In this document: piece by piece, positions 17,451 through 64,000 of the stretch
Layout: each line of letters starts with the position of its first letter
Position numbering within the stretch: position 1 is the stretch's first letter
DNA from: Fimbriosthenelais zetlandica
Lineage: Eukaryota
NCBI GenBank assembly: GCA_977030845.1
Contig: OZ365114.1
Span: forward strand, 19,034,001 to 19,098,000
Length of the DNA: 64,000 bases
Reading direction: 5' to 3'
Notes under the pieces: model-generated
What the model saw: only the letters and a program-made list of their open reading frames with translations
What the model was told of the DNA's origin: nothing
Database searches by the model: none
Made by a program: the position numbers and the translations under genes

Positions 17451-18048
17451 TACCGGCTTTCAGTATCAAAATTCTTTGATGCAGCCATTGGAGGCCTTCT
17501 TTGGTGATGGAAAACCAAAACTTACAATAATTATTAGGATCCAATATGTTCTAAATTCTTCTTAATGCATTAGAATTTGTATCGGCCATAAGCAATGAAG
17601 ATGAGATGAGACAGAAATGATGATGGTCTGTGATCTTGATTAATGGTCCAAGATCAACAGTACCCAAAATCAGTGCTCTGGTGATAAGTTGGTTGGCGAT
17701 TTGTTGCTGAACTGAAGCACCTCATTTGGGGTCTGTTCCATTGATGTCATGTTTAATTGAACTATCTTGAACATAGTCTATAAGATACATGCATGGTTTT
17801 ATAAGTATCAATTGAGGAAGTATATTAAAGTGGATGTGATTATGACCAGGTGTCTGGCAATTGTGGCAATTATCTTTTTTAATTACCTCATTAAATCGAT
17901 ACTTTAAAAACTTATGTTTTTGTTGTGTATATCCTCGAGGGGAAACAATCAACAGTTTCAATGTAATCTGTTTAAAATGAAGGTAAACAAATTCATGATA
18001 AATTTTATGATAAAATGTGTCTAATATTTTTCATTATTTACTTTGCAG

Positions 18049-21000
18049 TGACGTCAGAACAAGTTTTGGTGTGGTCACAACATTCTCACAAATGGACAAA
18101 ATTACGTGGTCTATTCGGTGAAACTGACTGGCAATCTCAAAGCAGAAAAAGATTTGTGACAAGTGAATCCTCCAGGGATAAGGTTTTTAACAGTTTAGGA
18201 TACGATCACAAGACAAGATACTTATATTGGCATGACAGTACGACTAAGGCCATCTACCGTCAGCATGTCAACGACAGCCTGGTGATGAGGAGAGATGATA
18301 ATATAGAGTTAGTATATGATGGGACGTCAGGTGTGGTTAAAGGCCTGGCCGTCGACTGGATAGGAGGTAATGTGATATGGGCAGACAAAAATAAAGAAAC
18401 AATCCTCATGGCCACAAGAAAAAACAAGGGAACCCAAGTTTCACGTGTGGTTATGACCAATGTCGTTGAACCAGTGGGGTTGGCTGTTGATCCAGTGGCA
18501 GGGTAAGTACAAAAAGGATCCATAAAAGATGTCACACATTTTTTTGGCAATTTAGGACACCCACCCTTTTGTCCTTGGTTCCTTCCTATTCTAAAACATT
18601 GCGTGTCACAGAAACTGGACATCCCCACCCCAAAAATGTATGACGTCTTATATTGAGGGCCACTATGTAATTTATATTAAAATAAAAATATCAGCTCTCA
18701 GCTATCTTCTCCAGCATCAGATGTGCCGACACGCAAAAAGTATAATTGGCAAAATGGTTATTTGCAGTCTGATCTACTGGGGAACAAATGACTTCCTTAG
18801 TACCAAGATTGAGAGCTGCACATTCAACGGGGAGGGACGGATGACCCTGGCCCAAAATCCTGATGTCAGTAACATGCAATGCCTGAACCTTGACCGGTCT
18901 GAGAATGCTCTCTACTTCATCCAAGTTTTCAACGAGGTCTACCTCAGCAAGATGAACCTTGGTGATCGCCAAATCACCAATGTTCGCCCCCTCAGTGGCA
19001 GCCGGTATGCAGCTGTAGCTTCACATGGTGTAAGTGTAACTTGGTACATGTATAGGACATTTCAATTGGATTTCTTGGTCTCTTGACTTTTAGCTTTGGA
19101 TATGTGCTTTGAAACAGCTATTTGTACAGACAATACAAGGGTGGGATACGCAAGTTAACAGTTTGGTGATGTCTGCTATCTTCCCAAATATATATCTATC
19201 TTTCTTATTTATCCTGTAGGATTACATATATCTGCTATACGCAGACAATTTGGAACTCAAAGTTCTCAATAAACGAGGACAGGATGTCTATAATCATGTC
19301 ATTGATGCCATTCCACACGACATCGTGGTCACTGACCCCCTCTTTCCTATAGACCCACCAGACGGTATGTCACATCAAATCATATTTATACCTTTGTACC
19401 CTTTCTGATTGCTCTATTGCATGCTAATGCAAAAAAATGTATATACGCATAAGTTAAGAAGGCGAAAGTTATAAAGATTTATTGAATCGTTAGAATCCAT
19501 AAGAGCCTATACTGAAGCTCCAGGATCACGTTTCAAAACAAAAATGAGCCATAGGCTTAGCATTGCTAATTTTCCTTTCGAAATAGGCGACTGAATTTAC
19601 TTTAGCTTTACTAGCTCGGTTTCCATTATGTTGTACAATGAATGATAATGTATTTACCTTTTTTATTGTTGTCAGATTGTGTTAGACTTGACTGTGGTGA
19701 CTTCTGCATCAGTAAGGGTATGTCTGATGGAGACTCTACCCGGGTCATGACCGAATGCCGGTGTCGAGACAAATATTACTTCGAAATGGATGAGCGAACC
19801 TGCGCATGTAAGAAAGTACACTCCATCAGATTATGAACAGTACATCCTTTTTTACAATGAATATGAATATCATGAGGAATATTATGGAGCTTATTATTAA
19901 GTAATCAAAAGCCAATCTAGTGGCAAATGAGACACTAGATTACAGAACATATGGGGGTTCAATATATGAATGTGATGCATTCTTAGCTGATGGAATAAGA
20001 TAGACCCTAGAATGACTCTCTCAGTGGCTCTAACAAAAGTTCTATAATTCATTTACAGCAAGCATGCCTCGGTACATATACAGTGTAGATGGGGATTTAG
20101 TGAACCTTGTAGCTGAGTTACCCATGCCCTACACTAATGGAGAAGCCCAATTGACGCAGATTGCCAGTGACTACTCCCGGATAGAGGCAATTGGTTATAA
20201 CTTCATCCAAGACCAGATTTACTTCTCAGACACTCTAAAAGAAGCCATATATCGGGGAGCGGTAGACACAGAGGAAGACTCATTCGTGGAACATACAGTG
20301 AATGAATATAATGTTCAAGGTAAGGGGGATATGTCACTTATGTTTAGGTAGTACAACTATGAGAATACCGTAACTGTGAGTAAAATTGTTCATGGTTAAC
20401 ATTAACATTAACGCAAAATAATTGTAGTGGGAACTATGCATACATTGACGTTTTGGTTTTCAGGTATTGCCGTTTGTTGGCTCACTGATACTGTATATTG
20501 GGCTGACGCTGACCTGCGACACATCATGCTTTCACAGAAGGATGGACGGTATCATAAGGTGTTACTGGAAGATGTTGGTACACCACGAGGCTTGACGGTT
20601 GATGCTAGCCATGGGTAAGTTGGGTTATAACCAAAAAACATCAAACTGGTTCTTATGGCATTTATGCTCTTCTCAAGTGAATAGGTGACACTGCACTCCA
20701 CCCTTGGGTACCCATTCTCCCACTCTCTTGGTGTGGATGACTATCATTCCACTACTATTCCTCTGCCTGTCCTTTTCATACTACATATTGCATACTACAT
20801 ACTACTCATTTCAATTTGCGAAACATGTCAAAGGCAATATGAGAAGTCTCTAATGAGGCAACATAGTATTCCAAACGAAACAATTTTTTGAAAAGAATCT
20901 TATATTATTATGGACTTCAGATTAATTATGGGTATACCTCATCCTTGTTATTTAGATACCTGTTTTATGCTGAGGATGATGAGAAGGCCATTAAGCGAGC

Positions 21001-53699: not shown

Positions 53700-56600
53700 T
53701 CAGATAACCTGTAATCTAGGGACGGGTTGAGAAGGTGCTGCCATCTGTTTCTCTAATTCAGAGTATTCTTTTATGACTGAATTAAGCGACTCGAGGCTTT
53801 CATCAAACTGACATTTCTCCATGCCATCCACGTGTGTATAATGATGAATATGCGCCTGGAAAAAATGGAGATAGTTGTAGCTTTTAATTGTCAAGGCAAA
53901 TTACTTATCGCTCAAACGACGGTGATCAATTTATTTGTAGGATAAACATTTTTTGAGCAATTTGTTCACAAAGTTCAGGCTGTTTGTGAATAAAGATGGA
54001 ATGGAAATTTTATTTTCTAATCGTCCCTTGGCTCACCTTGCGTTTGAAGAGTTTGTGGAATCTGTCACGAAGCTCGGAGAAGTTATTCTTGACGCACGTG
54101 TTGTTGGCCAAGGACAGTAAGGAGAAGGGATGATTGACGGGAGGTACAGAACACAGACCCGTCTTCCAACCTTCTTGATTCCAACTTATGAAATTTAAAG
54201 ATGGACGGAGTCTGCAAAAAAAAAAGAGGAGCACATAATACGTGATAAGTCTGAACACAAGATGCTGATTAGTCTAATTTAAATATGAACCTTAAAATGT
54301 GTTATAATATTTCCAAAATTAGACTTTCTTCCTGGGTGTAGGGATACATAGGCTATTAGAAAGGGGAAAGACAAGGACTACCTGCTTCGTGTAGAGGGGT
54401 AAGATAATACCTACCTGTCTATATTTCTGCGTATATCTGAAGCCTCAATGTCTCCTCGCACCATGAGGGCGCAAGATAAGTAAAGACTGTGTTTTGGATC
54501 GGCCTTGATCATTTGATGGTCCCTAGAAAATGCATCTGTGAACATTTGGTCCAGCCTGAAAAAAAGTTCATGAATGTGTAATACATGTGTCTAAATGTTA
54601 ATTCTTCTTGGATTAATCTATACCATTAAAGACAAATTTTCGATCCATTCCACTTGAAGAAAGAGCAGTCGGGAGCAGTTCAGATCTAGTGATGAAATAT
54701 AGCAAACGGACCTGTTTCTTGGATTTTTTATATCTTTCAACGCGTAAAGAGGAGTTTGACTAGAGACGAGGTAGTGGAGACGGGGGAAGGGTACCAGGTT
54801 CATGGTAATCTCATTCAAGTCAACATTCAGATAGCCATCAAACCGAGCAGAGCTGAAAGACAGGGACGAAAACAAATTAAAACATAATATTTTATATCTA
54901 AAGTTGACTACATTATACTGTGTGAAATACATTTGAATTGTATAATTATAAATGCCGGTTCTTCTTGTTAGAATATTAAAAATTGCATTTTCGTAGAAAA
55001 GACAATAAGATGTTAAGAGGAAAAGTTATGGCTAACTTGTGATGAATTTCATTAGAATTACATGAGATGTAACCATCTGAACAAGAGAAAAGAACTAATT
55101 ATAGAGAACTACCTTGTCATGTTGAGGAGGAGATTGGCTACAATGTTATTCATGCCATCAAAGGGTTTCTCATCCCTGACCTTGGTGGCGCCACCCTCGC
55201 TGGATGTGATGGCGCTCTCTGTTTTCACCCTCACAGCTCCGGTAGAGGTGTACGTCCTCTTACCCGTCTTACTGGATGGGACCGCATCGTTTATCTTATT
55301 GACCAACTCCACCAGAGCCTGAAAAATAAACCATGGAAAACAATGCATCATTTATATTATATTTGTCTTATTGATTTTCTCAAACTTACCCGATATATCA
55401 TCTGAATATTTTATCAGGTCTGTGTTAAAATATAACACTAAATAGGCTCTAAGATTTTTAATGAGATAATGTATGGAAATCTTTTCCTTGGAGAAATTAT
55501 TGCACTAGATGTTAAGAAAAATCTATTAATGTAAAAATGATTAATGACCTGGTTTTCTACAGGCAGCACACAGTCGGCATGATTGGTCAGTTCATTCATG
55601 GCCAGAACGCTGTTATAGGGGGAAGTTATGACGTCATCATCACAGGACGGATATACCGCTGTAACGAATCTGAAATTACATCATTTTGTTATTAATTGTT
55701 AACTCAACTACGAGTGGAATTAAGACATGGATTGGTGATCATAGAAGCCTTTAGACGGCCTAAAATGTATGCAATAAGATCTACAATTTATGTAATAAGA
55801 TCTGTAGATGCTATATTTAGTATCGAAAGGCAATTAATTTAGCTAAATTACATAATATAAATGACTGGGTATGCACCTGTAAACGTCTGGAAATTCGTCC
55901 TCAAGAATATTAAGTACTGCAGTGCCCAAACCTGAACCCGTACCTGATGAAAGAAGGAACACATTCATGAACTTTACTAAAAGTTATTAAAGCAAGATTA
56001 TAAATTGAGATTTACGGTAATTTGTGGGGATTTTTATTCAGTATGCCCAGGTTTATTCCCAGAACTGACTGTGAAATTTTCTCAGGTAGTCTGACCCTTT
56101 GGTTGTGTGTTGGGATGGGGAGAAGCCTTCCCATGACAACTTGAAGTAAACATTTAAAGCTACCAATCAATACGGATCTCACTGCGGTAGTCATGGCAAC
56201 TTAAGTCAACATCAGGAAGCGTGGAGAATCCACTATACTCATATCCCATACTCACACCCAGTGAAATGTCTATAGCACCTCAAATATTCTTCAAAATCAC
56301 AACAAATTTTTAAAGAAATAAAAGCTTTAACACATTGCGTTTACTCCACAAAATTTCTTAGGCTTCCAATTGATTTGGTCATTGTGGGAGTGGTAGTGGT
56401 ACCATTATGAATTCAACAATGGGAATATTTGTTTGGCACCATGGTAATGAATAGTCCTACATTGAGTCACAACCTCGAGAGTATGTAGACAATGATCTCA
56501 ATATACCATGAGCTAGAGCAGCCATGAGGTTAACATGATTAAACGGGGAATTAAACTACAAGTGAAACTGTTCAACTTTGATCCCAACAAAATCTACTTT

Positions 56601-59600
56601 TGTGATTTTTAATATGGAAGTCCCCACTGCTCACATACATGATCAATAGCCAAACAATACTGGTCCACTGTTACATGACCTGTAAAAGCTTACTGGGGGG
56701 ATTAGGAAGTGGGAGGGAGGAGGGGTAGAGGCATACAACGGTGAAATCTATCTGGTCACTTTGGTGCAAATATGAATATAAATTATGGTGCAAATATGAA
56801 TATAAATGATAGTACAATATCTAATTAACTGCCTTGTAATTTGACCTGTGAAGTGTCCAAATATTTTTGTAATTTGTCACAATCGAGAACGAAGGGATAA
56901 CAGGACTATCCTTTTAAAATTCTCAAACGAGCGGAAAGGTACCACCCGTAGAGAGCCCCATGAGTACCTTGAGCCCAGCCAGGTGTGACGGGAGTGGAGG
57001 AGGGAATAGTAGCATGTAGGATTGACGGGACTGGACTAGCCCGGGCCAGGTAACTGACAAGGTAACTCTATATCTGGTAAACCTACCTCAAATCTAAGAC
57101 CAACTCTCTCCTCCAGGACCCACAATTTGAGCTCAGGCATACCTATCACTACACTAAATTGCAGGTAAGTTATCGTATATAAAATGACATATGTCAGACG
57201 TTTTGATCATGGTTTCCATGTTCATATATGTCTAACTTTCCATACATATACATACATGTATTGATCAATTTATGGTCACAGCGTTTAGTCATAGTGAAGC
57301 AGACTTGTGAGGCAGTGGCTTGTTTACATACATGATCTGACAGAGGCATGAATGTAATACATTCCAAGTTACATTCTACCCATATGTCACTTTTAAATTT
57401 TACTTAAGTTAGCCATCATATGTTAGGAGTATAACGGCAACTACATTTTCATTCAATACTCCCGTTACAAAATGAGGATAGGCCTTATATTAGGCCGATA
57501 ATTTAATATTGAATTATAAGAAACAAATCAATATTCAGTGACACTAGTACAAATGTCAATAAATACACTTATTGTTACATCTATGTAATGTAGTTAATCA
57601 ATTTTTAGTCAATAGCTACATTATACTGGCCATTATTTATTTTAGCAACATGTTGTTGCACATAATGATGTAGCTTACACTTGGCCTAACATATGTATCA
57701 GATTCCAAAGGACTTTGTCTGTCCCTTTGTTTGGATTTAATCAAATTGATATTCCATTTATGTTATAATCTATACACATGCGCGAGATCAGGCACATGCA
57801 TGTAACATTATATTTATAATGTATTGAATATATTTTCAGACTGATGTGAAGCAAGGAGCAAAGGACAACCATCTGTATGGATACAAACAAGTAGTAGTCA
57901 GTTTTCAACAGAGCACAAACATGGAAGCTATGGGTTCAGAACTGATCAGATTTCGTGGTCCAGACTCTGACGAATACACGATCACAAGAAGGATCGAGAC
58001 AATCGTAAGCTGTGCCCTGTGTCGATTACCTTACAAAGAACCCAAGACTTTACCATGTGCCCACACCTTCTGTAAGAGATGTCTGGGGGACTATGTCCTA
58101 CAGCAGAGAATGCAGGACTCTAACAGGTGTCCTGCATACTTCCCCTGTCCTACATGTGAGAGGACCTGTCCTGTCCCTGCCAGGTGGGCCAACCTCCCCA
58201 GTCAAGAGATTCTGAAGACATTGGCTGAAACCGTCAATTCCTCAACCTCCACTCAGGAATGCACTATATGTGGCAGCCAAGGCAAGCGTTTGGCTTCCTC
58301 ATATTATTGTGTTAAATGTGAGGATTTTCTCTGTGAGGAATGCTCCAAGAGCCACAAGAAAACCAGGATGACCTGGGATCATTTACTGGTCAGGATGACT
58401 TCCATGCAATACGCTCAGCAAACCCAGACCAGTGCCACTAAGATGTTCGCCAAATTTGGTCGTCACGGCGAGGACCTCAACTTCCCTCACAGTATTTGCA
58501 CCAACAAGGCTGATGATGTCATTGTTTCAAATGATAATAATGAAATAACAGTGTTTACTGCAGGTGGGTCTTGCAAGAAACACTTGAACCAGCAACCCTT
58601 TTTTGGGGACACCACCCTATATCCCCATAACCCAAATCGTGGCATTGCCTTCACTCAGGAAGGGTACGTAGCTGTGGCCATTAGGAAGAAAGTGACCAGT
58701 GATTCCATGACATGTGTGGCAGTGATTGAATCACTAGCCAGTCGGGAGATAGGGAACTGTCAGACTAAAATCAGTGACTACGGCTCCTGTCAACCGTCAG
58801 GAATTGCCATCATGGTTAACAACTGTATAGCGATTTCCGATGCTGGACTTCACTGTGTTTATATCTTTGATGAAAAGTACAAATTTGTTAAAAAGTTTGG
58901 CAAGAAAGGGAGTGGGGACAATAAGTTTTTATCACCATATTATGTTGCAGTTAATAGACGCAATGAGATTCTAGTCTCTGACCATGGTAACCATTGGATT
59001 AAAGTGTTCGATTCCAAGGGCAAATTCAGAAGAAAGATAGGTGGTATGGGACTAAACAATGGCCACTTCCTGCATCCAATGGGCCTCTGTGTTGACCCAG
59101 ATGGTAATATCTTGGTAGCTGATAGGGATAATCATCGCATCCAAGTTTTCGATATTGCGGGCAAATATATCTGCACCATAGTCAGGGAAACCTTTGAGAA
59201 AGGCAAGGACATAAGGCCCATTGATTTAGCCTTTAATAACAGTGGCCAACTCATAGTCCTACTCAAAGGTATAGAAGGTGAGGACTTTGCTGAAATCAGA
59301 GCTTATGACTATGACCTTGACGGGACAAAGAGGAGAAAGAAGAAACAGGCTTCTATAAGGAGTGGGAGATATGGAAGCGCTCCAGCCAGTGGTCACAGAT
59401 CCAGACCAGATGAATACACCGAGGAGGAGGAATTCCAGAACTTTGAAGGGCACGCATCACCATCTCAGAGGTCAGGAAAGGGGAGATTATCGAGGCCTGC
59501 CCTTCCTCCCATTGGAGGGTCTACACATAAAATGTACGAGCGACCACTTCATTTTGTGGCTAATAATGGAGAGCATTCCCGGGCACCCAGTGCTCCTGGC

Positions 59601-62600
59601 CACCGTATTCGACATGACACGGACAACGACGAGTATGAAGAGATCGGCAGGACACCTCCCAGCAGGAGGCGGCGGAGGAGGAGGAGTGCTAAAACCAGAA
59701 CAGTACAACCCCCAGCCTCGAAAATATGTAGCGTAATGTGATGAGAAACTGCATAAATATTTAATTTTTAGTCTGAAGTGAATATCTTTAGTCATAGTCA
59801 TGTACATGTATCTTACAATTATCCTGATGTATATCGAATATCAGAATGCAAGACTTAATAAATTTCACTCTTAACTGTGCAATGTTTTCTTGGCAATCAT
59901 ATACTATTCAATATGTAGATATGGCCAACTCAATAGCTATGTTTTACGGTGAGAGATTTCAAAAGAAAGCTTTAGTGAAAGCTATTTTCTTTTATCTTTA
60001 GATCAAGGTTGTCTCCAATGTTCCCCAATTCTTCCACACGTTTATTCTCTAGTTGTTCAACGTGGTGTAGACCACTAAGCCTGGCAGGCCATCAAAGGTA
60101 TTATAATCATAGAAATGTCAGAGGATTCTATATATATGGTGGACCAGCTCACCTGTATTGGATGCTCTGACATTCACTCAAATGAATTCTACCTGTTTCC
60201 TAGACATAATTGGGCTGTCATATCGGCAAAAATTGTGAAATTTAAACGGACAGAGAATTAAAATAGAATATAATTTCCTTCAGACCGCCATTTCATAAAA
60301 TCATATAGGTAAACCAGAAAGACATACTAACTGATAACCATGCAGAAATAAATCCCAGTCAAATATAGAATTAGGGTACTTTTAGCAAGAACTTTTTCCT
60401 AGCCATAATTTCATAGACAGATCTGGGTAACCACAAGAGACTGACCGATTAAAACGGGCATTTAAAACAGAGGTTAAATATACAGATGGGCAGATACTCA
60501 AATAATAGAGGGATTAGGGTCTGGTAGTGAGAAATCTCAGACGTTATGGCCTCCACATCATTGATCCCCCAGGCCAACACTCCATGCAGGTTGATTTTGG
60601 CCCAGTGATAACAACCACCTTGTCTGTGAAAGGCAGGTAAAAGATAACAGGTACGCTAAGACCCCGCTACCACACTCCCTCAAATGGCACATACAGCTGC
60701 ATATTATAGTTCACCAATAAAGGCAATGATTGAAAACGGAGGTTCTCTTGAAAAGTAATGAAAACAGACGATATGTTGAAGTTTATAAACGTTGGCAATA
60801 AAATAGTGTGTAAGAGACTCAATTTGAGAATGAACGGTTTAGTAGCAAGTATACGGTAGCATTAAAAGTGATGCTCTATGATCAAAATCTGCCTCAGTCC
60901 CGGCTGAGGCACGAGGCGTGACACAAGACAGGGACTGTTTGGGTGGCTAAAAGTAAAAGGATATCACAGTAAACGGACTCGAAATTGCACTAAATTATTA
61001 TACAGACATAAACAAAGGTAGGTTTTGGGGCATGAAAATCTGGATAGAATCTATTGGATTACTTCATCCATATGATATATATTGTGAAGTTTCATGTGCT
61101 CGAGTTGGGGGAGCTGGTATCTTTGAATAATTATATATCATTTTTCTATTTCAGAAACACTGGAGAAATATTAAATAATTATGACCTCATTTACAAAGTG
61201 ATATTAAGTAACACTTGTGAGCCTAAAATCTTCATTATGGAGTCCTCCTTAGCCACTCAGATACAAAACGAGTGTCTGACGTGTGACATCTGCAAATGTT
61301 CTTTTATTAAACCAAAAGCTCTGCCTTGCCTTCACACATTCTGCTGTGAATGTCTAGACCGCTATGTCCATACTAATGTTGCTAGGTACCTCCCGTGCCC
61401 TGTGTGTCGGCGAAGGTTTAAAGTGCCAAGGAAAGGAGTGAGTATCTTCCCAAGTAACCATCTTATTAATGGCATATCTGAACTAATAGACAAACATGTG
61501 GCTCATCACGGCCAGTACAAACAACCAGACGCCTGCGTGCCTTCGGGAGGGATTAAAGGAGCCAATCTTCTATCAGAGCTAGTTGGAAACTTCAACGAGG
61601 ATGGAAATGAATGCCCATTCCTCGGTACCAGCAATAACGAAGCAAGTCAGGACAGACAGGAGTCACTTGCTGAGAATATAACTCAAAATCTAGCAGGGGC
61701 AAGTGTAGAATCCCGCCGGTTGAACCCACAAGATGTGCACGTGTCCAGACCTTCTCTGGCGGCTGTGAGCCGTACTGAGATATTCGTGGATACCAGCGGT
61801 CGTTCACACTCTGAGAGCAGCTCGGAGCTTAACCTCTCTCCTGATTTCATCTGGACACAGAATATGTCTCCACAGAAATGTCCCCATCATGAGGCTTTAG
61901 CCTTCTGGGTGGACACTCATCTGGTGGACCAGGAAGCCCTACATCGCTTTGGTCAGTATGGTGCTAACCTGGCAGACTATACAGCCCCTATGAGTCTAGC
62001 TACAACCAGCACCGGGGAAGTGGTCGTCTCTGATTTAAGAGAGAACCGAGTGATTGTCCATAACAGGGAAGGTGGCCTTTGTGTGAGTTTTCAATGTCAG
62101 GAGGAGATCCGAGGCATTGCTGTCACAAGTGACAAGGTTATAGTAGTTGCGGTGGCTTACTCTGACACAGACGCCATCCACTGCTATAACATGGGTGGAG
62201 AACACATTCACTCGGTAGTCAAAAACTCACCCTATGAGCAACCACATGGCGTGTCAGTGACGCGGAACAATAGAATACTTCTAACTATGGTTGATTCAGG
62301 AGATGTGCATTCAGTGGAAAGTCTGGCCATAGGGGAAGGGGAGCCTGGGGTTCAGCCTAAATTAACTTGTAAAATATTAAACCCAACTGCAATGAAAGTT
62401 ACTCCCTATTACATAGACACTAGCCATAATGGTAACATCATAATAGCAGATGCAGAAAACAAGGTGGTCCGGGTATATGATGAGAAGGGGGAAGCGCTGT
62501 TCACATTTGGAAGCAATGAACTGAAAGCACCTAGAGGAGTATGCACAGACTATAAAGATAACATAGTGGTGGCTGATGCAGAAAGGAGGGCTGTGTTACT

Positions 62601-63822
62601 GTTCGACTGTAAAGGGAAGTACCTTAGAACCATTATGCAGTACTCCATGGACAGAAATAACCGGTTTCTTCTATTTCCTATTGATGTGTCTATTAGAAAT
62701 TTTGAACTCTTTGTTCTGGTTGTAGCACCTTTCTATTGCCAAGTCCGAGTTTATGGTTATAGACCCGTGCCTCTGGCTGGAGAGGCGCAAACTTCCATCT
62801 GTTCAACTATGTGAAATATACTGGTTCAAAAGAAGACGGAAACATGGAATCTGTAGGAATCCTACGTGTTATGATTTTTTTTTCAATTCAACCTAGAAAC
62901 AAAGCCCAAATTAAACCCCAAGTCCTATAGAAGAGGGAATTAAAGGAAAATAAATAATATGTTTTGTTCATTGTTACTTATTTCTACCCCCTTCGTTTAT
63001 CCCTTCCAGTTCCAAATACAATGTACAGAGACTCTGTACTGTACTGTGAACGATGGTTCCACTCTTCTACTTCCAAGAGCAATTCCCTGCCCTGGGAGAC
63101 ATGGACAAAATTGTTTAGTATAATTAAAGATTTGATCATAAATTAGTACATACCTCCACCCATGGAATGAAGGACGAAGAAACACTGTAAACAGTCACAG
63201 AACTCGGCAGATCGTCTAACTATGTCTGAAATATGTTCCCTGTAGCGAGTACCGTAGTCCATGTGTCCAACAGCCCTGAGGATTAAATAAAGTATTTATT
63301 AGTATTTCAGGACTAAAAGAAAAAGGCCGCCTATAATTTTCAAAGCGTGGATACACTGTAATATAAATAAGTAAAAACTGACGAGGAGCAGGAAAGGGAT
63401 TTTATTGAATTATTAAATAGTAGAATTAAATTAAAAGTACTGACCAGTTATTCCCTGAACCAGACACGTCTGTAATGTGCTGTCTGTGATCGAAAACATC
63501 TTTCAGTGGACCTTTCATTATCTCACTGACGACACCTTCCTCCATATCAATAAGAACTGACTGAAAGTAAAGATATAATAATGTGTCAACGATAGTCAGA
63601 AATCCGAATTAAGGAGAACTAATTGAATTTCTTGGCCATAACGAACCTAAACTATCATTTTTAGTATTATTTATCATGGTTCATACAAAAAAATTAGCCT
63701 ACCCGAGCTTTGAGAGAGCGTATTCTGCCAGGGACAGACCCCAGTGGGATTTCAGCAGGGTCGTCATAGCGTGTGTCCACATTTCGGAAGAAACTATTCA
63801 TAGACTCATCGAAGATTCCTTT
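53700..63822 (-). CDS. TUBE1: Epsilon tubulin (5' exons lie beyond the window end)
   Basis: 10 exons: 63703-63822, 63445-63560, 63154-63275, 55877-55943, 55549-55669, 55113-55318, 54712-54852, 54415-54555, 54037-54211, 53700-53855 (455 codons, in frame). Peptides SFFRNVDTR, VLIDMEEGVV, SGSGNNWAVGH, HSMGGGTGSGLG, DVITSPYNS, SWNQEGWKTGLCSVPP. Confidence 0.95.
57921..59741 (+). CDS. RING-B-box-NHL (TRIM-NHL-like) protein 1, 606 aa, intronless CDS, C-terminal CSVM
   Basis: RING CALC...PCAHTFCKRC...CPTC; B-box CTIC...CVKCEDFLCEECSKSH...DH; NHL repeats (FLSPYYVAVN, FLHPMGLCVDPDGNILVADRDNHRIQVFD). The ATG at 57921 lies downstream of a splice acceptor at 57840. Confidence 0.9.
   Translation: MEAMGSELIRFRGPDSDEYTITRRIETIVSCALCRLPYKEPKTLPCAHTFCKRCLGDYVLQQRMQDSNRCPAYFPCPTCERTCPVPARWANLPSQEILKTLAETVNSSTSTQECTICGSQGKRLASSYYCVKCEDFLCEECSKSHKKTRMTWDHLLVRMTSMQYAQQTQTSATKMFAKFGRHGEDLNFPHSICTNKADDVIVSNDNNEITVFTAGGSCKKHLNQQPFFGDTTLYPHNPNRGIAFTQEGYVAVAIRKKVTSDSMTCVAVIESLASREIGNCQTKISDYGSCQPSGIAIMVNNCIAISDAGLHCVYIFDEKYKFVKKFGKKGSGDNKFLSPYYVAVNRRNEILVSDHGNHWIKVFDSKGKFRRKIGGMGLNNGHFLHPMGLCVDPDGNILVADRDNHRIQVFDIAGKYICTIVRETFEKGKDIRPIDLAFNNSGQLIVLLKGIEGEDFAEIRAYDYDLDGTKRRKKKQASIRSGRYGSAPASGHRSRPDEYTEEEEFQNFEGHASPSQRSGKGRLSRPALPPIGGSTHKMYERPLHFVANNGEHSRAPSAPGHRIRHDTDNDEYEEIGRTPPSRRRRRRRSAKTRTVQPPASKICSVM
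61237..62814 (+). CDS. RING-NHL protein 2, 525 aa, intronless CDS, C-terminal CSTM
   Basis: RING CDICKC...PCLHTFCCEC...CPVC; NHL repeats (PRGVCTDYKDNIVVAD, PYYIDTSHNGNIIIAD). 5' UTR intron 61018-61154 (donor AAG|GTAGGT, acceptor TTTCAG). Confidence 0.9.
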   Translation: MESSLATQIQNECLTCDICKCSFIKPKALPCLHTFCCECLDRYVHTNVARYLPCPVCRRRFKVPRKGVSIFPSNHLINGISELIDKHVAHHGQYKQPDACVPSGGIKGANLLSELVGNFNEDGNECPFLGTSNNEASQDRQESLAENITQNLAGASVESRRLNPQDVHVSRPSLAAVSRTEIFVDTSGRSHSESSSELNLSPDFIWTQNMSPQKCPHHEALAFWVDTHLVDQEALHRFGQYGANLADYTAPMSLATTSTGEVVVSDLRENRVIVHNREGGLCVSFQCQEEIRGIAVTSDKVIVVAVAYSDTDAIHCYNMGGEHIHSVVKNSPYEQPHGVSVTRNNRILLTMVDSGDVHSVESLAIGEGEPGVQPKLTCKILNPTAMKVTPYYIDTSHNGNIIIADAENKVVRVYDEKGEALFTFGSNELKAPRGVCTDYKDNIVVADAERRAVLLFDCKGKYLRTIMQYSMDRNNRFLLFPIDVSIRNFELFVLVVAPFYCQVRVYGYRPVPLAGEAQTSICSTM

Positions 63823-64000
63823 CTGAAGTGAAAATGTGGATACAATAAATACAACTAAGTGATAAAGCAGAACAAAACACTGTAAAGAAACAGGAATACA
63901 ATGATAGACATGGCAAAAAAATGTGTATCTGTAGTGTAGACTGCCATTACATGTAGGCCTAGTAATAGTATTATATGTATAGTACCTGTTAGCCATCAAT

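Follow-up and report, generated by a model that had tools for sequence, protein, structure and literature searches.

The ubiquitin ligases TRIM2, TRIM3, TRIM32/Thin and TRIM71/LIN-41 combine a RING finger with a six-bladed NHL beta-propeller, and research on TRIM-NHL and RING-NHL ligases has treated them as soluble factors that regulate mRNA, the cytoskeleton and development. To our knowledge, no characterised TRIM-NHL member is lipid-anchored. NHLRC1 (malin) is a minimal RING-NHL ligase that is encoded by a single exon and has no coiled coil. Membrane attachment by other means occurs among RING ligases: TRIM13 and TRIM59 are anchored by a C-terminal transmembrane helix, and MGRN1, which like LRSAM1/Tal carries a TSG101-binding P[ST]AP motif, is N-myristoylated. 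Within the ubiquitin system, the proteins known to be prenylated are chiefly F-box adaptors, UBL3 and a few hydrolases; among its ubiquitin-system candidates the 2007 PRENbase survey has UBL3, USP32, a plant E2 and FBL2 but no RING or NHL protein. FBXL2 and FBXO10 are geranylgeranylated substrate receptors of the Skp1-Cullin-F-box (SCF) ligases, placed on membranes by a C-terminal CaaX box, i.e., Cys, two residues a1 and a2, and a terminal X (PMC9988375, PMC11573457). Here we describe two neighbouring genes, gene 1 and gene 2, that encode RING-NHL proteins ending in CaaX. They lie in a 64,000-nucleotide stretch of the Fimbriosthenelais zetlandica genome (assembly GCA_977030845.1, contig OZ365114.1, positions 19,034,001 to 19,098,000 of the forward strand), which we call the window and number from its first letter.

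We read genes 1 and 2 as tandem paralogs of an old RING-NHL ligase-type family that lies within a tubulin-family gene, inside one of its introns, and whose products are candidates for CaaX tethering to membranes. We put the probability of this reading at about three in four. The two genes probably belong to an undescribed family of lipid-anchored ligases, the lipid attachment being what we infer from sequence. Full-text literature searches pairing CaaX or prenylation with TRIM, NHL or RING E3 turned up no account of a prenylated ligase of the RING or TRIM-NHL type, in agreement with the suggestion of an initial annotation of this DNA that the candidate is of an undescribed kind. The novelty lies in the combination of known parts, a RING-NHL ligase and a CaaX anchor. 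FBXL2 and FBXO10 are the closest functional precedent, being CaaX-placed ligase components with compartment-specific substrate targeting. They show no sequence relationship to genes 1 and 2 and are adaptor subunits of cullin-RING ligases, whereas here the RING itself stands on the CaaX-bearing polypeptide. If true, this would be a new route for placing a ligase on membranes.

Checking the DNA against the open reading frames (ORFs), we found that both proteins do end in CaaX, CSVM (59727-59738) in gene 1 and CSTM (62800-62811) in gene 2, with the Cys exactly four residues from the C-terminus; every coordinate and residue of the initial annotation was correct. Each gene is an uninterrupted plus-strand ORF from its first ATG (57921 and 61237) to its stop codon (59739-59741 and 62812-62814), and gene 1 begins at the same aligned position as its 75%-identical ortholog. 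Gene 1 is laid out as RING, putative B-box, NHL propeller, disordered tail and CaaX, and gene 2 as RING, long disordered linker, NHL propeller, short tail and CaaX. The two are only distantly related paralogs: identity is 25% across the NHL region and 33% across the RING, and the tails after the NHL domain measure ~140 residues in gene 1 and ~15 in gene 2. This bears out the earlier statement that the proteins are highly diverged and that their tails differ by more than 100 residues.

To see whether the terminal Cys is kept in relatives, gene 1 was compared with 5.8 billion proteins, which yielded nine close homologues at 37-75% identity. All nine end in CaaX: CSIM twice, CVVM, CVIL four times, CLIL and CVIS. 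A profile search of 1.84 billion representatives gave a top list dominated by giant multi-NHL proteins and added two clade members, P0283 and P0309, ending in CVIM and CLIL. The Cys at -4 is present in 13/13 sequences of the gene-1 clade, that is, in gene 1 and in 12 of the 12 others. The two closest homologues of gene 2 end in CALM and CSII, and a gene-2-type gene adjoining a gene-1-type gene in locus L013 ends in CPCM, so that the uninterrupted gene-2-type sequences have the Cys in 4/4 cases (gene 2 and three of three relatives). A profile search with the gene-2 alignment returned no new members; the same search missed the downstream gene of locus L007. CaaX-ending RING-NHL relatives, which the initial annotation had proposed to look for, were thus found in both clades, and its refuting condition, orthologs without the terminal Cys, did not come true: every uninterrupted ortholog or paralog compared in the two clades retains it.

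Elsewhere the residue is rare. Among the other retrieved homologues, Cys stands at -4 in 5/392 (1.3%), the Cys frequency across the last 30 residues of this background set being 1.5%, and three of the five are plausible CaaX boxes on molluscan isoforms. The more distant TRIM71/TRIM2-like matches of gene 1 have it in 0/111. Across the tail, the gene-1 family alignment has just four invariant columns, L528, P559, S600 and C603. Comparing gene 1 with its closest ortholog, we obtained a nonsynonymous divergence (dN) of 0.09-0.10 for the domains, of 0.50 for the tail and of 0.11 for the final eight codons; these are contrasts of dN only and not dN/dS ratios, because synonymous sites were saturated in every comparison, that with the closest ortholog included. 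The 140-residue tail evolves ~5x faster than the folded domains, and its last eight residues are as slow as the domains. The X residue is Met in one gene-1 subclade and Leu in others, with the Cys constant throughout, a pattern that fits selection for prenylation as such rather than for one tetrapeptide. Judged by these counts and by the slow last eight codons, the CaaX of genes 1 and 2 is a real feature under selection, as had been suggested. The invariant Ser three residues ahead of the Cys in gene 1, with similar Ser/Thr in molluscan tails (..STT-C), could be a phospho-switch; such switches next to CaaX are known in some Rho and Ras GTPases.

The same conservation bears on whether the C-terminus is a lipidation signal at all. 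It could be a PDZ ligand, a C-degron or another motif, or be kept by chance or descent. By our reading the S-x-M and V-I-L endings do resemble class I and class II PDZ ligands, and close relatives share ancestry, so that the counts are non-independent. Yet what never varies is the Cys at -4, which neither PDZ domains nor known C-degron motifs need, while the last three positions vary. The Cys has also been kept across saturated divergence, in two clades and in a dedicated molluscan micro-exon (see below). We therefore give very little credence to this explanation.

The domain assignments place a ligase-type head before the CaaX box. RING models scored over the Pfam cut-offs in both genes, with a complete C3HC4 ligand pattern; for gene 1 these were zf-RING_UBOX and zf-C3HC4, and its PDB matches were to the TRIM2 RING. 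Going by the intact zinc-ligand pattern and homology, the RINGs look functional and the products are predicted ubiquitin ligases. The B-box matches of gene 1 scored 19.7-20.7 bits, below the gathering cut-offs of 24-27. The region has the full Cys/His pattern, H145 and H154 are nearly invariant in the family alignment, and the predicted local distance difference test (pLDDT) score is 77-85 in the AlphaFold2 (AF2) models, which were built for both genes with family alignments. The gene 1 propeller has pLDDT values of mostly 82-96, and Foldseek matched it best to the NHL domains of TRIM3, TRIM2 and Thin, with a template modelling (TM) score of ~0.83. For the gene 2 propeller the PDB matches were the TRIM3 and TRIM2 NHL domains. 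The PDB NHL-domain matches of the two genes had E values of 4e-54 and 1e-22.

The closest solved structures are thus the NHL domains of Drosophila Thin (TRIM32), TRIM2, TRIM3 and TRIM71 and the RING of TRIM2. No other proteins matched genes 1 and 2 better in sequence and fold; in common are the RING and the six-bladed NHL propeller and, for gene 1, also a putative B-box. Unlike TRIM-NHL ligases, neither gene has a coiled coil or a filamin domain by Pfam and AF2. Between the B-box and propeller of gene 1 the AF2 model has an 11-residue helix only (residues 159-169), and Pfam and AF2 found no B-box and no coiled coil in the gene 2 linker (residues 92-230). On these grounds genes 1 and 2 encode RING-(B-box)-NHL proteins that are kin to the TRIM-NHL group without being full tripartite-motif proteins, and the TRIM label needs qualifying. 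Gene 2 is, by description, like NHLRC1/malin, a minimal, intron-less RING-NHL protein, and differs by a disordered linker of ~140 residues and by its CaaX end. Residues 469-606 of gene 1 have pLDDT <50, i.e., a flexible segment precedes the CaaX box; the ~15 residues after the gene 2 NHL domain are also disordered (pLDDT <50 at residues 514-525). Because both tails are predicted to be disordered, the CaaX boxes would be accessible.

We then asked how these boxes compare with known prenylation signals. The CSVM of gene 1 is identical to the validated farnesylation signal of human Rheb (PMC7255682). In yeast, human farnesyltransferase (FTase) modifies CSIM (prelamin A), CVVM (N-Ras) and CVIM, and human geranylgeranyltransferase-I (GGTase-I) fully geranylgeranylates CVIL (PMC11152559), which is the commonest box in the gene-1 clade. 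For CSII, farnesylation in yeast reaches 100% (PMC10320760). In a yeast screen of 8000 CXXX sequences, CALM received heat-map scores of 3.84 and 16.2, above the values listed for unmodified sequences. The main exclusions in the yeast screen were D/E/K/R at a2 and K/P/R at X, and none of the boxes of the RING-NHL CaaX family has an excluded residue at either position. A Thr at a2, as in CSTM, occurs in CKTQ, the farnesylation motif of CENP-E (PMC4384735). The RING-NHL family thus contains tetrapeptides identical to those of Rheb (CSVM), prelamin A (CSIM), N-Ras (CVVM) and K-Ras4B (CVIM), likewise preceded by a flexible hypervariable tail. It differs in having no conserved polybasic or palmitoyl-Cys second signal, and in that its cargo is a ligase and not a GTPase or lamin.

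Analysing the tails for a second membrane signal, we found a net charge over the 20 residues before the Cys of +9 in gene 1, of -2 to +4 in the 12 other gene-1-clade members and of 0 to +2 in the gene-2 clade. The initial annotation had pointed to KRRKKK and a seven-Arg run in gene 1 as a polybasic second signal. Both clusters are present; as a second signal they did not stand, the Arg run being specific to gene 1 and the charge ranging from -2 to +9 in the clade. A farnesyl-plus-polybasic signal of the K-Ras4B type was accordingly rejected as a family property. A farnesyl-plus-palmitoyl signal of the H/N-Ras type was rejected as well, there being no conserved upstream Cys: a Cys within 20 residues upstream of the box occurs in P0283 and P0122 only. 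We also considered N-myristoylation. By our reading the second Met would give MGSELI, a start that lacks the small residue usual for myristoylation at position 6 and that the ortholog does not share, and the idea was set aside. Since no polybasic or palmitoyl second signal is conserved, a Rheb-like endomembrane site would be likelier than a K-Ras4B-like plasma membrane site.

The missing second signal can also be taken to mean that the lipid is a handle for protein-protein or chaperone binding (Spindly, CENP-E/F, PDE6-delta/GDI-type shuttling) and not a stable membrane anchor. Farnesylation of Spindly and CENP-E/F targets kinetochores and not membranes, and a single farnesyl binds membranes weakly. 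Against this, X is Leu, the geranylgeranyl type, in roughly one half of the gene-1 clade, and geranylgeranyl alone binds membranes firmly; the long flexible leash of gene 1 also suits a tether. We consider the handle explanation unlikely. The basic residues raise another question, namely whether gene 1 behaves like a lamin, with a nuclear localization signal (NLS)-like cluster and a farnesyl directing it to the inner nuclear membrane. KRRKKK directly follows the propeller and is partly kept in the four closest orthologs, which carry CSIM, the prelamin A box, or CVVM. The cluster is kept in those four only; neither gene 2 nor the more distant half of the clade has it. It lies ~130 residues from the CaaX with no lamin-like second cleavage context evident, and its NLS function is only putative. 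A lamin-like role is accordingly highly improbable.

Tethering to endomembranes, the reading we prefer, would work as follows. The RING would dock the E2, and the NHL propeller would capture a substrate or RNA. Cytosolic FTase would lipidate the Cys where X = Met, and GGTase-I would do so in the relatives with X = Leu; the final three residues would probably be trimmed and the new C-terminus methylated. The lipid would then hold the ligase on the cytoplasmic face of endomembranes, from where the RING-NHL head could act on membrane-proximal targets through a leash of ~140 residues in gene 1 or ~15 in gene 2. The leash of the gene-1 clade carries LPP[IL] ~25 residues upstream of P[ST]AP, which may hint at partners linked to the endosomal sorting complex required for transport I (ESCRT-I) or to endosomes. 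P[ST]AP is the classic ligand of the ubiquitin E2 variant (UEV) domain of TSG101, and the motif analysis suggests the gene 1 PSAP (59586-59597) as a candidate ESCRT-I docking motif, purely as a hypothesis. By description, the gene-1 clade shares RING and P[ST]AP with MGRN1 and LRSAM1, and would share a lipid anchor with MGRN1; the domains and the lipid are different, and the TSG101 link is putative. TRIM13 and TRIM59, again by description, are RING/B-box ligases placed on endomembranes by the C-terminus, as is predicted here, through a transmembrane helix instead of a prenyl group and with no NHL domain. The short tails and the natural Met-type and Leu-type variants make the family a clean test system.

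To place the two genes in their family, we trimmed every complete sequence by its final ten residues, kept the partial L007 row as it stood and inferred a maximum-likelihood tree. The gene-1 clade was monophyletic (support 100/100), with CaaX in every member. Gene 2 grouped with P0121 and P0122 (93/72), and its L007 counterpart joined them. Inside a 100/99 superclade this group was sister to nine sequences, among them proteins of Pomacea canaliculata, Tegillarca granosa and Mytilus edulis, all nine being without CaaX as annotated. The gene-1 clade and the gene-2 superclade were joined by a weak node (77/46). Genes 1 and 2 fall outside the molluscan group, though it is among molluscs that their nearest named relatives occur. 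Of the CaaX-clade proteins checked in the cluster tables, none carries a protein name; the sole named CaaX-bearing relative is Pomacea isoform X2, labelled 'TRIM2-like'.

The tandem pair occurs in the same order and orientation in three other assemblies: in L001 with CSIM and CALM, in L013 with CVIL and CPCM, and in L007 with a gene-1-type CVIL, the neighbour's tail being outside the locus. A further locus has a 585-residue reverse-transcriptase-like ORF of a retrotransposon (L014:16777-18534, minus strand) at the expected gene-2-type position downstream of P0004. In the window both RING-NHL genes lie inside a ~7.2 kb intron (55917-63152) of a divergent tubulin-family gene on the opposite strand. 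Its identity comes from a Tubulin Pfam match on the Tegillarca host gene and a weak alpha-tubulin match. The same nesting was seen by tblastx in the window, L001, L007, the gastropod Pomacea (L008) and the bivalve Tegillarca (L011), and Tubulin Pfam matches in the host or neighbouring gene support it in L011, L013 and L015. Genes 1 and 2 thus have their positional counterparts in the molluscan genes. The Mytilus gene (P0130) is not nested in a tubulin gene.

The positional counterparts show how a CaaX end can be hidden in an annotation. In Pomacea canaliculata (GCA_003073045.1) isoform X1 ends ...DSTT-WYFVN and isoform X2 (XP_025088909.1) ends ...DSTT-CAVA. In the genome (L008:11505-12620) the exon ends ACC TG/GTACTT, the slash marking a donor that splits the Cys codon. 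About 1.09 kb downstream there is a strong acceptor, a long pyrimidine run plus cag, followed by a 13-nt micro-exon, T GCT GTT GCC TAA, with whose stop the annotated gene end coincides. If the donor is read through, Trp-Tyr follows and translation stops a few codons on. In Tegillarca granosa (GCA_029721355.1, L011:11330-11995) the annotated protein ends HWSPPVF, a read-through of the donor CAC TG/GTCC, and the sole strong acceptor in the interval, 630 nt past the break, encodes a predicted and unannotated C-FVL-stop. Going by these splice sites, the deposited Tegillarca gene model probably misses a CaaX micro-exon. All nine annotated non-CaaX tails have Trp where the similarity stops, the outcome expected from TG/G read-through. 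Gene calls that ignore a 13-nt terminal micro-exon thus conceal CaaX in annotated molluscan proteins, and molluscs offer a natural isoform pair with and without the box. Among unrelated TRIM45-like proteins, Patella vulgata TRIM45 isoform X3 (P0175) ends CVVA and Octopus bimaculoides TRIM45 isoform X5 (P0227) ends CLLQ; alternative ends that encode CaaX may be a recurrent feature of TRIM genes in molluscs.

Several observations weigh against a prenylated family of this kind. Two assembled Pomacea transcript contigs are both of the unspliced, non-CaaX form, and the CaaX form is therefore an alternative isoform, possibly a minor one. Mytilus has the same break (GCA TG/GTCC) followed only by a weak CNIA candidate. 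In the P0124-type lineage (L015:11200-11254) the gene reads ..SMT-C and then GTAAAT, a good donor directly after the Cys codon, and no aaX micro-exon was found in any phase within 6.7 kb. As to the boxes themselves, CSTM of gene 2 and CPCM of L013 are the least canonical, at a2 or a1, and since yeast FTase accepts most CXXX sequences, a motif match adds little beyond the conserved Cys.

The initial annotation had raised the possibility that transcripts splice to different C-termini. For the closest ortholog of gene 1, the 75%-identical one, contigs of equal length (2027 nt) had been assembled independently from two sequencing runs. They have 22 nt 5' of the ATG, a colinear ORF running to CSIM and ~200 nt 3' of the stop, with AATAAA ~40 nt from the end. 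The contigs resemble mRNA, and an RNA origin of the runs is probable. The concern thus probably falls away for the closest ortholog, whose probable transcript is colinear and ends in CSIM, and it is borne out in the molluscan relatives, where the end depends on splicing.

For the history of the box, the most economical account is that CaaX arose once, long ago, in the ancestral nested gene, and that intron loss and duplication followed in the window lineage. CaaX may instead have been gained twice independently, as the tree requires two changes under either scenario. Going further, the family might be lipid-switchable: splicing to the Cys-splitting micro-exon versus read-through or intronic polyadenylation would set anchoring, molluscs would have kept this switch, and the window lineage would have lost the intron, fixing the anchored form, and then duplicated; the long P[ST]AP/LPPx leash of one copy would recruit ESCRT-I, making that copy a prenyl-anchored ligase for endosomal sorting or budding. 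We hold this extended account to be doubtful.

Table 1. Features of the two RING-NHL genes and of the host gene in the window.
Feature	Positions	Strand	Description and evidence
Gene 1	57921-59741	+	Single-exon coding sequence, 606 residues plus stop; ORF, Pfam, ortholog alignment, AF2 model
Gene 1 RING finger	58008-58190	+	Residues ~30-90; all C3HC4 ligands present
Gene 1 B-box-type zinc finger	58248-58400	+	Residues ~110-160; Cys/His spacing read from sequence
Gene 1 six-bladed NHL beta-propeller	58434-59315	+	Residues 172-465; Pfam NHL E 2.6e-23
Gene 1 disordered tail	59325-59726	+	Residues 469-602; pLDDT <40; fast-evolving except three short motifs
KRRKKK basic cluster	59328-59345	+	Residues 470-475, directly after propeller; sequence, family alignment
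LPPI motif	59502-59513	+	LPP[IL] in most gene-1-clade members; alignment
PSAP motif	59586-59597	+	P[ST]AP at the aligned position in 8/13 gene-1-clade members
Seven-Arg run R582-R588	59664-59684	+	Unconserved in orthologs
S600	59718-59720	+	Ser 3 residues ahead of CaaX Cys; invariant in gene-1 clade alignment
Gene 1 CaaX box CSVM plus stop	59727-59741	+	TGT AGC GTA ATG TGA; Cys is C603
AATAAA, candidate poly(A) signal	59857-59862	+	116 nt past gene 1 stop
Gene 2	61237-62814	+	Single-exon coding sequence, 525 residues plus stop
Gene 2 RING finger and next helix	61237-61509	+	Residues 1-91; Pfam; PDB TRIM2/TRIM56 RING matches; pLDDT 72-90
Gene 2 disordered linker	61510-61926	+	Residues 92-230; pLDDT <40; 19% identity to ortholog
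Gene 2 NHL beta-propeller	61927-62766	+	Residues 231-510; Pfam NHL E 7.6e-10; pLDDT ~90
Gene 2 CaaX box CSTM plus stop	62800-62814	+	TGT TCA ACT ATG TGA; Cys is C522
AATAAA, one of several candidate poly(A) signals	62949-62954	+	~135 nt past gene 2 stop
Host tubulin-family gene, 3' exons	53709-55917	-	tblastx vs Pomacea, Tegillarca and other loci
Host gene 3' exon matches	53709-53873, 54031-54258, 54408-54563, 54705-54858, 55055-55327, 55534-55674, 55870-55917	-	
Host gene 5'-ward exons	63152-63876	-	63152-63277, 63444-63566, 63700-63876; tblastx

The AATAAA spacing after both genes is compatible with compact single-exon transcription units. Performing tblastn, we found no further RING-NHL copies or pseudogenes in the window, which also contains no runs of N and no Rfam families. 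Two tails, those of P0130 (Mytilus edulis TRIM2_3, L012:14150-14264) and P0132, carry Cys clusters, CCSCC and CNLMCC, that resemble S-acylation sites. Elsewhere in the window an ORF of 163 residues (18015-18503, plus strand), with no detectable similarity to the RING-NHL genes, gave a sub-threshold SGL/beta-propeller Pfam match (E 0.002).

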